A DNA stretch of 64,000 nt from positions 652,416 through 716,415 of the forward strand of contig RQSC01000027.1 in the NCBI GenBank assembly GCA_013416795.1, given 5' to 3'. The notes beneath the pieces were generated by a model. That model worked only from the letters and a program-made list of their open reading frames with translations. It did not search any database and had not been told where the DNA came from. The position numbers and the translations under genes are program-made. Position 1 is the stretch's first letter; each line of letters begins with the position of its first letter. This DNA is from Prasinococcaceae sp. CCMP 1430 (taxonomy: Eukaryota; Plantae; Prasinodermophyta). This document shows, in pieces, positions 22,242 to 28,552 of the stretch.

Positions 22242-24509
22242 TCACTTCGTCGCCTCCATGTAAAACTCGAGCGTGACGGCGGTGTCGGAGTCAGGCTCGA
22301 CAGTGTACGGCGTGGCGGGTGGCACAAGGCGCAGCTGACCCTCTCGCATCTGCACGCCGCCCACCGCGGCGCTGCCCGCCGCCTGCATGATGAAAGTCTC
22401 GCCCGCGTGCGAGACCGTTTGGCCGCCGCCCGCCTTGCGCGTCACCATGCGCCCCTGGAACTCGGCGCCCTTGAAGAGCGGCGCGCGGCCCGCGCTCGTC
22501 GAGCGGGCGTCATCCAGGCAGCCCGCAAGCGAACGCGGCGCCGCCACGTCCACCGCGTCGTCGATCGCCACGGGCGGCACGTCGAGCACCTTGCCCGGCA
22601 CAGCAGCGCCACTCTTGGACGCCTCGGACGCGAAGTACGCCTCGATGACGGGCTTGAGCTCCTTCCCCAAATCCTGGCAGTGCCACCACTCCTCGTACAG
22701 CACCTTGGTGGCGTCGGCGCCCTCGCCGTAGAAGCGCAGGCCGTCGAGTTCTCCCTCCAGGCGCTTGCGCTCCGCCACCAGCCCGATGGTGTGCGCGCCG
22801 CGCTGCGGCGAGTGCGGCACGCGCGCGGGCAGCAGAAAGATCTCGCCTTCGCGGATGGGTATGTCGCGCCGTGCGCCGTGCTCGAGCACCTGGAGCACCA
22901 TGTCGCCCTTGAGCTGGTAGAAGAGCTCCTCGCCCTCGTTGATGTGGAAGTCCTTGCGCCGGTTGGGGCCACCCACAGCCATAACCAGCCAGTCGCCCGC
23001 GCCGTATACCATCGCGTTGCACACGGGCGGCGCGAGTCGCGCGGCGTTCACCCGCGCCCACTCGCCGAAGTGCACCGGGGCGTCCGCCGTCGCCGCCGCC
23101 TCCATCTTGGCGAGCTCCTCCTTGAGCATGAGCACGAAGAGCCTGCAGTCCTCGTAGGTGTTGTACAAAGGCACGGGCGCCACGCGGATGACGTCCGGCT
23201 TGCGCGAGTCGACGACGGCGCCGCGTGCGCGCAGCGCCTTCTGCACGGCGGCGGCATCGCGTCCCTTGATCACCACCGACAGCATCGCACCGCGGCGTGC
23301 CGGGTCCCGCGGCGTGAGCACGTGCACCCTGCTGCTGCCGATCTGCTCCTCGAGCAGCGCCTCCAGATAGGCGGTGAGGCGAATCGACTTGGCGCGGAGG
23401 GCCGCCATGCCAGCCTCATCATGGACGTCGAGCGACGTGCGCAGCGCGACCATGGACAGGGTGTTGGGGTTGGACAGCATGAACGAGTACGCGCCCTCCT
23501 GCGGCACGAACTCGAGGCCCATGTCGAAGCGGTCGGAGCGGCGGTGCCCCCACCAGCCGGCCAGGCGCGGCAGCTCGTCCAGGCTCGCCTTCGCCCAGCG
23601 CTCGTGCACGAAGAGCCCCGCCATGCCGCCCGGGCCGGAGTTGAGGTACTTGTAACTGCACCAACACGCAAAGTCAACGCCGTCATCGTGCAGCGACAGG
23701 TCGACGTTGCCGGCCGCGTGCGCGAGGTCGAAGCCTGCGACGGCGCCCACCGCATGGGCGGCGTCAGAGATGGCCCTGAGGTCGAAGCGCTGACCTGTGT
23801 AGTACTGCAATGCGCCCATCATGACCACCGCGAGCGTTTCTCCGAGCTCCGCTATCTTGGCGAGCACGTCCTCCTCGCGCAGGTGCACCTCGCCCTCGCG
23901 CGGCCACACCCGCACGAGCACATCCTCGTGCTTCAGCCCGTGCAGGCGCGCCTGGCTCTGCAGCGCGTACTCGTCCGATGGAAAGGCCTTGCCCTCCAGC
24001 AGGATGACGCGGCGCGTTTCGGTCGGCCTGTAGAAGGCGCACATGAGTATGTGGAGGTTGGCGGTGAGCGAGTTGCAGCACGCGACCTCAGCGGGCGTCG
24101 CGCCGAGCAGCCGCGCGCACTGCTCGCGCACGGTGTCCTCGATCGTCCACCACGGCGTCGCGCACTCGGCGCGCGACTCGTCGAAGTGCCCCTCAACGCC
24201 CATAGCGGCCCACTGATCCAAATCGGCGTCCACGGCGGCGCGCACGGCCTTTGGCTGCAGCCCGAGCGAGTTCCCACACAGGTACACCAGCCTCTCCGCG
24301 CTCTCGTCGTCGGCGGCAGCCGGGTCGCGCGGCGGCACGGCGTAGCGGGCGCGGAAGCGCGCGAGCGCGTCGGCGGCGTCGAGCGCTGCGGCCAGCTTCA
24401 CGATCCCGGTGGCCGCGCCCGCGCCGACGCCGGCGTCGGCCAGCGCGCCCGCGAGGTGCCCCGCCGCAGGCAGCCTGCGCCAGCCACCCCGTCCCGCCAT
24501 CGTCACCAT
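22242..24509 (-). CDS. KYNU-HAAO: Kynureninase fused to 3-hydroxyanthranilate 3,4-dioxygenase (KYNU-HAAO), single exon
   Basis: KYNU: YLCGNSLGLQPK, AFPSD, DLAHAAGN, WCSYKYLNSGPG, GWWGH, IRVAPVPLYNT. HAAO: PPVCN, VGGPNRRKDFHINEGEELFYQLKGDM, EGEIFLLPARVPHSPQR, ERKRLEGELDGLR. No stop or intron between them. Confidence 0.95.
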   Translation of the reverse strand: MVTMAGRGGWRRLPAAGHLAGALADAGVGAGAATGIVKLAAALDAADALARFRARYAVPPRDPAAADDESAERLVYLCGNSLGLQPKAVRAAVDADLDQWAAMGVEGHFDESRAECATPWWTIEDTVREQCARLLGATPAEVACCNSLTANLHILMCAFYRPTETRRVILLEGKAFPSDEYALQSQARLHGLKHEDVLVRVWPREGEVHLREEDVLAKIAELGETLAVVMMGALQYYTGQRFDLRAISDAAHAVGAVAGFDLAHAAGNVDLSLHDDGVDFACWCSYKYLNSGPGGMAGLFVHERWAKASLDELPRLAGWWGHRRSDRFDMGLEFVPQEGAYSFMLSNPNTLSMVALRTSLDVHDEAGMAALRAKSIRLTAYLEALLEEQIGSSRVHVLTPRDPARRGAMLSVVIKGRDAAAVQKALRARGAVVDSRKPDVIRVAPVPLYNTYEDCRLFVLMLKEELAKMEAAATADAPVHFGEWARVNAARLAPPVCNAMVYGAGDWLVMAVGGPNRRKDFHINEGEELFYQLKGDMVLQVLEHGARRDIPIREGEIFLLPARVPHSPQRGAHTIGLVAERKRLEGELDGLRFYGEGADATKVLYEEWWHCQDLGKELKPVIEAYFASEASKSGAAVPGKVLDVPPVAIDDAVDVAAPRSLAGCLDDARSTSAGRAPLFKGAEFQGRMVTRKAGGGQTVSHAGETFIMQAAGSAAVGGVQMREGQLRLVPPATPYTVEPDSDTAVTLEFYMEATK

Positions 24510-25199
24510 CGCCACCCGCCGGCGCCCGGAAAATTTGAAAAAAAAATATGTGGAAGGGAGCGCGCGAGGCGGAGGGCCTCGAGGGGCACGTCGAGGCGCT
24601 CGAGTCCGGAGCGGACGCCGACGCGCGTGCGCGGTGCAGGGTGGGGGGTGGGGTGGGGTGGGGCGGGGGGCACGCGAGCGCGCGCGCGCGCGCGCGCGCG
24701 CGCTGAGTACCGCAGCAGCGATGGGACCGCGGCGTTCGTTCCCCCTCCTTTTTTCAAGGGTCGTCTCCCATTTCTTTCCCGCCACGACTCGCCGCGCGTA
24801 CGTTTTCACCACGCATTCCACAACTCACCTCCAATTCAACTCTTCTTCCGTGAGTTGTGGCGGTTACACAAGAAGCTGCGGTTCCCGCGTGAATTGGCGC
24901 GCGAATCGACGCGCGTTCAATTTGACCTCCAGAGTGCTCGCGCGTGCGATGTGACGTGTGATGTGTGACTAGTCTACTGAGGTCGATGTGATGTGATAGG
25001 GCGTCACCAAGCCAAAATCTTTTTTTTTTATTTACTGTACATTGTTGTGTATGGGCTCTTGAATTCGGCACACAAAAAAGAGCGGCAGCGGCTATTCGAA
25101 CACTGCGCCACAGCGCGCGCGCGGCGCGGTGACGGGCGCTGCGGGCGCTGTGCGGGAGGAGGGGGGGCGCCCTGAGGCGGTCGCCCCTCCCGCTTCGCG

Positions 25200-26905: not shown

Positions 26906-28552
26906 ATGTCGTGCCCCCTGGGGTACGGCTCTCCGGCGAAGCGCATGCACGAGGCCGCCGGCGGCGGCGTGTGCCCCCTGGGGTATGGCTCGCCAATGAA
27001 GCGCAAGCGGCGCGACGGCGGCGTCGACAGCGGCGGCGGCGTGTGCCCCCTGGGGCATGGCTCGCCGGTCGCCCAGCCTCCTGCGAAGCGCGCGCGCGCG
27101 GACTGCTACTACGGTGACTACCTGCGCGTCGGGCGGCTGCTCACCTGCCAGGAGCCGCGCTCCGGCGTCAAGGGCGATTCGAGCAAGCCCCCGGCGCACG
27201 ACGAGCTGCTCTTCATCATCACCCATCAGGCGTACGAGCTCTGGTGCGCGCGCGCGAGCGCGCGCCCAACGCACTGTGCGCCGCCTCCAGGATGATGCCC
27301 CGCCGCCGCCGTGCTTGTGCGGCGCGCTGACGTGCACGCGCGGCCGCTGGCCTGCCTCCTGCGCGTCCGCGTGCGCCGCGCTGGCGCCCCTCGTGGCTGC
27401 GCAGGTTCAAGCAAATTCTGCACGAGCTCTGGTGGGTGCACCGGGCGTTGGGCGCGCAGACTGTCCAGGAGATGGACCACGTGCGCGTGGTGCAGCGCCT
27501 CACACGCGTCGTCAAGATCATGAAGCTGCTCCTCGCGCAGTTTGAGGTGCTGGAAACCATGACTCCCATGGGTGCGTGCGCGTCGCTGCCGCCGCACGCG
27601 CGCATGCGCGCGTGGGTGCGATACTTGGGCTGCTGTTGACACGCGCGTTGACACGCGCACGCACGCAGACTTCATGGAGTTCCGCAGCGAGCTGGAGGGC
27701 GCGAGCGGCTTCCAGTCGGTGCAGTTCCGCACGATTGAGGCGCTGCTGGGGGTACCGGAGAACTCGGGTCGCAAGGAGTCGCTACGCGAGCGGATGCAGG
27801 AGCTCGACATGGTGCGCATCGAGTGCGCGCGTGAGATCCCCAGCCTGCTGGACCGCGTCGGTTCGTGGCTGGAGCGCGTGCCGGGGCTCGACGGCGAGTT
27901 CGACTTGTCCTCGAAGTTTGAGGCGGTCACCAAGGCGGCGCTCGCGAAGCGTCGCAGCGAGATACTCGCTGAAGGCACGCGCCGCTCGCGCGAGGCCACA
28001 CAGAACCTTCTCGCCGAATGCGCGCAGAGGGAGCGCGCCTATCAGTCCATCTTCGACGAGGGCGCGCATGCGCTGCTGCTGCGCGAGGGCAAGCGACGCC
28101 TCAGCCGGCGCGCGATGATGGGCGCGATCCTCATCCGCTCGTACCGCACCCAGCCGCGCTTCCACATACCCGACCAAATCATCGAGAGGCTCATGGACAT
28201 CGACGAGCTCATGATGAAGTGGCGCAACGATCACGTCCTCATGGTGCACCGCATGATCGGATTCAAGACTGGCACGGGTGGATCCTCGGGCCACGCATAC
28301 CTGCGCTCGACGCTCGGCGAAGAGCACCGGGCGTTCAAGGATCTCTTCGATCTGACGGGCTTCCTCATCCCAGCTCACCAGCTGCCGCCGGTGACGGAGG
28401 GCTTCGCGGCTCTCATGCACTCGGTGCCGTACCGCTACGAGGACATCAATGCCAGGATGGTCAGCGACAGCAGCACCGACGAGGAGGTTGGCCAGGGGCA
28501 GGAGTCCTCCGGCGTCGAGAAAGACATCGAGGAAAAACGCGAGCGCTCCTGA
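26906..28552 (+). CDS. TDO: Tryptophan 2,3-dioxygenase, eukaryote/animal-type, 3 exons
   Basis: [21 protein letters not shown]|[15 protein letters not shown]|[58 protein letters not shown]. Introns 27244-27404 and 27572-27668. Confidence 0.95.

Follow-up and report, generated by a model that had tools for sequence, protein, structure and literature searches.

Head-to-head TDO and KYNU-HAAO genes of the kynurenine pathway in the prasinodermophyte alga Prasinoderma coloniale

Introduction

Why do two genes for tryptophan breakdown lie side by side in a green alga? The genes in question are found in a 64-kb stretch of contig RQSC01000027.1 (64,000 nucleotides with a G+C (GC) content of about 69% throughout; hereafter the window) from the prasinodermophyte listed as Prasinococcaceae sp. 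CCMP 1430. One encodes kynureninase (KYNU, EC 3.7.1.3) fused to 3-hydroxyanthranilate 3,4-dioxygenase (HAAO, EC 1.13.11.6) and is on the minus strand at 22242-24509, and the other encodes tryptophan 2,3-dioxygenase (TDO, EC 1.13.11.11) and is on the plus strand at 26906-28552, so that the two form a head-to-head pair. Green plants were long thought to be without the kynurenine pathway, with Prasinoderma coloniale as the published exception. Other Viridiplantae use the aspartate route to quinolinate (Ternes and Schonknecht 2014, PMC4217691), in agreement with the original prediction for this locus, which was made from the sequence alone and had stated as much for land plants and most green algae.

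The first report of a eukaryote with the kynurenine as well as the aspartate pathway concerned P. coloniale, which encodes TDO/IDO, AFM, KMO, KYU, HAAO and ACMSD and, in addition, AO and QS (Li et al. 2020, Nat Ecol Evol, PMC7455551). A KYU-HAAO fusion is drawn in Fig. 6b of that work, and picolinate production was proposed as the role of the pathway (PMC7455551). The fusion gene reported there is the one described here, and both the fusion and a GC content of 69.8% indicate that the organism is the same. This earlier publication of the pathway and the fusion was overlooked in the original prediction, which held that a genome with no KMO anywhere would have no complete pathway; the whole pathway, KMO included, has been reported for P. 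coloniale (PMC7455551). The main and supplementary text of that paper describes neither the head-to-head TDO, the conservation of the pair, unfused KYNU in relatives nor the anatomy of the fusion joint, although the supplementary tables may list coordinates. What has been known since 2020 thus comprises the fusion as well as the pathway and its enzymes; apparently new are the conserved linkage to TDO, the unfused relatives and the details of the joint.

Below we argue that the locus holds two working kynurenine genes of eukaryotic type that were probably maintained as a head-to-head unit, one of which seems to have been extended by HAAO later, and that their transcription may be co-ordinated.

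Results and Discussion

Two intact and transcribed genes

The open reading frame (ORF) at 22242-24821 of the minus strand codes for KYNU and then HAAO in a single frame with no stop codon between them, and between about 22300 and 24300 GC content shows a strong periodicity by codon position. Translation probably starts at the ATG at 24509 (MVTMAGRGGW) and would yield a protein of 755 residues; this start is read from the sequence, as the 5' 236 nt of the coding sequence are without an RNA contig. The kynureninase half matched TIGR01814 with 420.3 bits against an equivalog cut-off of 246.4, as well as PF22580 and PF00266, and scored 360 bits to human KYNU versus 169 to the Pseudomonas enzyme. 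The lysine that binds pyridoxal phosphate is kept (SYKYLN), and in the alignment human H102 and S332/N333 are conserved (within GH and SNP). In the human enzyme, these three residues reportedly select 3-hydroxykynurenine. As the KYNU half carries residues of the 3-hydroxykynurenine type, its product would be the substrate of the HAAO domain behind it. The HAAO half in turn matched PF06052 with 186 bits (cut-off 25) and TIGR03037 with 165 bits (cut-off 146), and scored 217 bits to human and bovine HAAO versus about 103 to the single-cupin forms of bacteria or yeast. The Fe(II) ligands H47, E53 and H91 (human numbering) are conserved, and the alignment extends into the second cupin.

The three exons of TDO join in frame to encode 462 residues that cover positions 8-346 of PF03301; the two introns between them had been missed in the original prediction. 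Similarity searches with TDO were run exon by exon, and the joined model was used to check the frame and to map the gene onto the contig of a relative described below. The distal His (ITHQAYEL), the substrate-binding Arg (FMEFR) and the proximal His (WRNDHV) align with H76, R144 and H328 of human TDO, and the GTGGSSG motif is kept. Exon 3 scored 187 bits to Drosophila and human TDO versus about 49 to bacterial TDO, and TIGR03036, the equivalog model for bacterial TDO, gave 92 bits against a cut-off of 390.7. By these sequence comparisons, TDO is of the animal or holozoan type.

The N-terminus of TDO (26906-27100) carries three tandem CPLG(Y/H)GSP units between basic patches (KRKRR and AKRARA), while the relative has a single MGGCPLGYG. 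Human TDO begins with MSGCPF. A hydrophobic residue after Cys-Pro is reminiscent of haem-regulatory motifs, a feature that may be of interest in a haem enzyme.

Both genes are transcribed. Contigs from two RNA runs of the same organism (X1 and X2) were compared with 22700-28650, and the spliced contigs among them show that they derive from RNA. A contig of 2,100 nt (X1 record 1) is colinear with the genome from 24273 down past 22700 with zero mismatches, spanning the KYNU/HAAO joint at 23103-23108 unbroken. Both TDO introns are skipped exactly in X1 record 6 and X2 record 18 (coordinates in Table 1). The depths of the contigs are alike for the two genes (19.4 versus 20.1 in X1, about 8-9 versus 10-11 in X2), though contig depth is a poor measure of expression. 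Thus the three activities named in the original prediction are all present, intact at the residues checked and transcribed, and its arrangement of KYNU-HAAO on the minus and TDO on the plus strand about 2.4 kb apart holds in strand and coordinates, with 2,396 bp measured from start codon to start codon.

In the pathway, TDO would catalyze step 1, in which the indole ring of tryptophan is opened, and the fused protein steps 4 and 5, converting 3-hydroxykynurenine to 3-hydroxyanthranilate and then to 2-amino-3-carboxymuconate semialdehyde. The latter could cyclize to quinolinate, leading towards NAD, or be taken by ACMSD to picolinate or to full breakdown.

The pair in a relative

A search with TDO exon 3 retrieved a protein (P0130) with 68% identity from Tara and other marine metagenomes. 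It belongs to an uncultured, GC-rich marine relative of the alga (about 70-75% identity; loci L003 and L016, GC 0.66-0.70, longest contig 16.3 kb), in which KYNU on the minus and TDO on the plus strand likewise point away from each other and have start codons 1,152 bp apart. TDO of the relative is 71% identical to that of the window, and KYNU 69% overall or 75% when a 93-nt in-frame intron with a stop codon is excluded. In the gene models, which were read from the sequence, KYNU starts at 8700 of L003 and has a short 5' intron, and TDO starts at 9853 (MGGCPLGYG...) and has one N-terminal intron. The junction of the two genes is bridged by one contig; independent contigs from other samples, which extend in from either side and end at a C-rich homopolymer, overlap at 9109-9252 of L003 and agree with it at about 99%.

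Intron positions differ between the two lineages. KYNU of the relative has two introns (L003 8250-8342 and 8566-8655) versus none in P. coloniale, and the one N-terminal intron in its TDO (L003 9911-10052) is at neither of the two P. coloniale sites. In a third lineage described below, KYNU has an intron after WCSYK (contig L107).

The surroundings of the pair are not shared. The other genes of the relative (melibiase, a two-domain epimerase, DAGAT, RCC1, FKBP-TPR, DUF789 and Sec20) had no orthologue in the 64-kb window, and seven window proteins from both flanks (CAF1, the UXS-like epimerase, Ctr, thioredoxin, an ankyrin protein, an alpha-kinase and an unnamed ORF) had none on the contigs of the relative; the sole match between the flanks of the two lineages was a 27% match between epimerases. 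As the flanking genes differ in both directions, rearrangement has affected either flank but left the divergent pair intact.

That the divergent arrangement of KYNU and TDO recurs in a relative with all flanking genes different makes chance an unlikely cause of the adjacency. The expected number of adjacent pairs from the same pathway, n(n-1)/N, is also small, at about 0.004-0.008 for N = 7,139 genes and n = 6-8 separate pathway loci. Given that the relative keeps the pair though the flanks differ, the pair behaves as an evolutionarily maintained unit. The original prediction had proposed a metabolic gene cluster and had named absence of the linkage in relatives, together with uncorrelated expression, as the mark of chance adjacency. 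Linkage was found in one relative (L003/L016), and the proposal is supported in part. The term gene cluster is generous, as there are two genes with three activities, where a metabolic gene cluster is usually defined as three or more non-homologous genes of a pathway that are adjacent and co-regulated. The window yielded no further gene of the pathway: as the original prediction had noted for formamidase, KMO and QPRT, no AFMID, KMO or QPRT domain was detected among the 25 larger ORFs scanned, a scan that was not exhaustive. The locus does share one trait of such clusters, namely linkage kept despite rearranged surroundings, in the one relative.

A known eukaryotic cluster for the lower part of the pathway is the 3-hydroxyanthranilate cluster of Ascomycota, which joins HAAO, ACMSD, AMSDH and a deaminase (Martins et al. 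2021, PMC7842363). Like the algal locus, it is eukaryotic and holds lower kynurenine genes including HAAO; unlike the algal locus, it is without TDO, KYNU or a fusion.

Age and rarity of the fusion

The fusion was likely a later addition to the pair. KYNU of the relative stops after ...LADELEK, exactly where the P. coloniale protein continues M-E-A-A-A, and therefore the fusion begins exactly at the old C-terminus of KYNU. In P. coloniale the joint reads ...LKEELAK-MEAAATADAPVHFGEW (...ELAK followed by MEAAAT...), with K468 and M469 on its two sides. M469 is probably the initiator methionine of HAAO itself, retained within the fused protein. No HAAO was found on the 13.5-kb locus L003 of the relative, including about 7 kb beyond the end of KYNU. 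In a third lineage, likewise GC-rich (P0311 on contig L107), KYNU is unfused as well; this KYNU is 62-65% identical and has one intron, with no HAAO within about 380 nt after it; the upstream sequence on that contig, at only 322 nt, is too short to show TDO. Because KYNU is unfused in both the relative and the third lineage, we infer that the TDO/KYNU pair predates the fusion, provided that the gene was not split in the relatives. Under this scenario, HAAO would have been appended to KYNU in the lineage of P. coloniale, keeping a methionine that was probably its own start. Genomes of other prasinodermophytes would allow this order, with adjacency preceding fusion, to be checked.

The fusion is rare. 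Among HAAO-domain proteins of 416-1,323 residues, KYNU was also present only in a 99%-identical metagenome copy of the protein in the window. When 1.84 billion cluster representatives were searched exhaustively with HMMER, the top matches were single-domain kynureninases (best 456 bits), which a fusion would outrank. Neither the word search, the region search nor the exhaustive search of representatives gave any other KYNU-HAAO fusion, and ten long or multi-stretch KYNU matches had other domains, none of them HAAO.

Other fusions of KYNU, or merged gene models, were seen among public proteins. In P0263 a Cyclase domain (PF04199) precedes KYNU, and P0360 and P0289 are other fusions or merged models; further combinations among the three are tryptophan synthase alpha with KYNU and a FLYWCH zinc finger with KYNU. 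The Cyclase domain of P0263 we take to be of the bacterial kynurenine formamidase (KynB) family. As in the alga, KYNU in P0263 is joined to an enzyme of tryptophan metabolism; the partner and the order differ.

Fusion of the two enzymes would fix them at a 1:1 ratio and probably allows 3-hydroxyanthranilate, which is easily oxidized, to be handed directly from one active site to the other. Being seamless and natural, the fusion is a ready-made construct to test channelling of this unstable intermediate.

Ancestry of the genes

Adjacency could also reflect common arrival, with the genes having come together from a bacterial operon or from another eukaryote. Viridiplantae are otherwise without the pathway (PMC4217691), as might be expected if it had been imported. 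In addition, KYNU of Bacteroidota is 53-55% identical to the algal protein and as similar to it as the nearest eukaryotic ones, and TDO, HAAO and KYNU do occur within a few kb of each other in bacteria. Of 80 TDO loci in a metagenome scan (34-43% identical, mostly on bacterial-looking, long intronless contigs, none of them Prasinoderma-like), about 15 had HAAO and/or KYNU within 10 kb, mostly downstream of TDO on the same strand; where both were present, HAAO preceded KYNU.

Six of the scanned loci, L048, L057, L080, L090, L092 and L096 (GC 0.30-0.48), have a co-directional TDO ... HAAO - about 1 kb - KYNU arrangement on long intronless contigs and presumably represent kynurenine operons of the Bacteroidota type. 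Gene clusters for the conversion of tryptophan to quinolinate reportedly occur in Bacteroidota and other bacteria.

The bacterial clusters resemble the algal locus in having TDO, HAAO and KYNU within a few kb. However, the bacterial genes are co-directional, separate and without introns, with HAAO upstream of KYNU, whereas the algal genes are divergent, spliced in the case of TDO and fused with KYNU before HAAO. A recent origin from a bacterial operon is argued against by these differences in order and orientation, by the spliceosomal introns and by the native codon bias, to which the native GC content can be added. The two-cupin, animal type of the HAAO half is likewise at odds with a joint transfer from bacteria.

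The phylogenies agree. In quick maximum-likelihood trees of KYNU and TDO, which were unrooted and thinly sampled, the sequences of the window and of the relative are sisters and fall among eukaryotic sequences. The neighbors of the algal KYNU are entries from MMETSP and EukProt and dinoflagellates, while those of TDO are Capsaspora and animals. Well-supported branches part the algal KYNU and TDO from the bacterial clades, KYNU being apart from the Bacteroidota clade as well. An operon of bacterial descent was rejected as the source on these two trees. Given the above, adjacency as a relic of joint transfer is very improbable, with transfer from another eukaryote a remote possibility, and a pair of eukaryotic descent maintained in the alga is the reading we retain.

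The spacer and possible shared regulation

If the pair was maintained, the 2,396 bp between the start codons may hold the reason. The spacer shows no strong codon periodicity, with a weak three-base GC signal only at 25200-25450 (0.82/0.52/0.84), and its sequence occurs only once in the 64-kb window. The weak signal, along with AT-rich islands at about 24990-25080 and 25930-25990, which bracket roughly 850 bp, could be due to chance or to a small unannotated gene or exon. Were there such a gene or a non-coding RNA between them, TDO and KYNU-HAAO would not be true neighbors and would have separate promoters, as could also be suspected from the spacer of the relative being half as long. However, five ORFs in the spacer had no Pfam match, and the ORFs of this stretch are rich in Arg, Ala, Gly and Pro, a composition typical of chance ORFs in DNA of 69% GC. 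A search of the spacer gave no credible Rfam match, and no RNA contig lay in it in the two transcriptome runs, where a hole proves nothing. On the absence of these three kinds of match a gene in the spacer was rejected, and we consider an intervening gene improbable.

Simple (GC)n repeats were the other candidate in the spacer. Only three loci of (GC)>=8, that is at least eight units, occur in the 64 kb, and the first two precede TDO and KYNU-HAAO by similar distances (Table 1); the third is at 30859-30876. When aligned in the sense of the genes, the two upstream regions are alike only as low-complexity sequence, and the tracts were not accepted as a regulatory element. A degenerate pattern drawn from the two copies was set aside as circular. 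The tracts do explain why metagenome assemblies break on either side of the spacer: of the P. coloniale metagenome contigs, one (L001) ends at 24692 and two (L011 and L012) start at 26749-26843, so that contigs are broken at both tracts and provide no independent view of the spacer.

The divergent genes are head-to-head as in a bidirectional-promoter pair, for which start sites less than about 1 kb apart are expected. The spacing of the start codons is 2,396 bp here and 1,152 bp in the relative, compared with that limit of under about 1 kb for start sites; the RNA contigs stop short of the 5' ends. Shared regulation of the two genes is putative; the most likely reason for their having stayed together would be co-ordinated transcription from the spacer between them.

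Several observations weigh against this view, in addition to the weak periodicity and AT-rich islands already mentioned. Conservation of the pair comes from a single uncultured relative, and TDO of Capsaspora, the closest named one, is linked to neither KYNU nor HAAO. A spacer of 2.4 kb is long for a classic bidirectional promoter. The (GC)n tract is missing on the KYNU side in the relative, and the tracts are of low complexity. Finally, comparison of the spacers of the two species gave no convincing conserved non-coding block; the sole match was the 15-nt GCGCGGGCGCGCGCG, which is about as far from the start of TDO in one species as in the other but is GC-rich, of low complexity and unconvincing. 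The single comparison, the long spacer, the lack of a conserved regulatory element between the spacers and the unlinked Capsaspora gene are what would be expected if the adjacency were a neutral leftover, TDO and KYNU having been neighbors in the ancestor and not yet separated, with neither shared regulation nor selection for the linkage. On the other hand, both flanking adjacencies were broken between the two lineages while the sole one within a pathway survived, and the prior chance of a same-pathway adjacency is under 1%. We therefore consider a neutral leftover rather unlikely and favor a maintained pair of eukaryotic genes.

A pair kept by a relative amid reshuffled surroundings offers a small, testable case of clustering of pathway genes in an alga. 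Its significance is limited in that the enzymes and the fusion were already known and the shared regulation is putative. More tentatively, it is possible that prasinodermophytes consolidated tryptophan catabolism in a stepwise manner, starting from an old, selected TDO/KYNU pair followed by seamless capture of HAAO, and that the pathway is organized as dispersed, co-regulated mini-clusters and fusions; if so, it would be a rare case of operon-like organization of a primary catabolic pathway in a eukaryote of the green lineage.

Other features of the window

The coordinates of the pair, its parts and its outer neighbors are collected in Table 1.

Table 1. Features of the TDO and KYNU-HAAO locus, in positions of the window
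Feature	Coordinates	Strand	Description and evidence
KYNU-HAAO coding sequence	22242..24509	-	Intronless, 755 aa + stop; ORF, frame, Pfam and NCBIfam matches, RNA contig
Kynureninase part (residues 1-468)	23106..24509	-	3-hydroxykynurenine type; residue alignment to human KYNU, tree
Fusion joint K468/M469	23103..23108	-	Sequence compared with the end of KYNU in the relative
HAAO part (residues 469-755)	22245..23105	-	Two-cupin animal type; bit scores, Fe ligands
Spacer between start codons	24510..26905		2,396 bp; no gene detected
(GC)13 tract	24678..24703		169-194 nt upstream of the KYNU-HAAO ATG
(GC)11 tract	26721..26742		164-185 nt upstream of the TDO ATG; shorter tract at 26691-26705
TDO exon 1	26906..27243	+	PF03301 positions 8-58; three CPLG(Y/H)GSP repeats and distal His (ITHQAYEL); donor confirmed by RNA contigs
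TDO intron 1	27244..27404	+	161 nt, GT..AG; skipped in RNA contigs
TDO exon 2	27405..27571	+	PF03301 positions 58-112, 46 bits; in spliced RNA contigs
TDO intron 2	27572..27668	+	97 nt, GT..AG; skipped in RNA contigs
TDO exon 3 with stop	27669..28552	+	PF03301 positions 105-346, 220 bits; FMEFR, WRNDHV, GTGGSSG
CAF1 ribonuclease (outer neighbor)	19497-21293	+	
UDP-sugar epimerase/dehydratase (outer neighbor)	28766-29752	-	

About 20 kb from TDO, with several unrelated genes between, the ORF at 48553-50280 of the minus strand matches the tryptophan/tyrosine permease family (PF03222, 131 bits). Its product is a candidate transporter of tryptophan, although the proximity to TDO is probably a coincidence. 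A further ORF at 8850-11123 of the plus strand combines an RNase PH (RRP45-like) domain pair with an inositol-trisphosphate 5/6-kinase domain in one frame.

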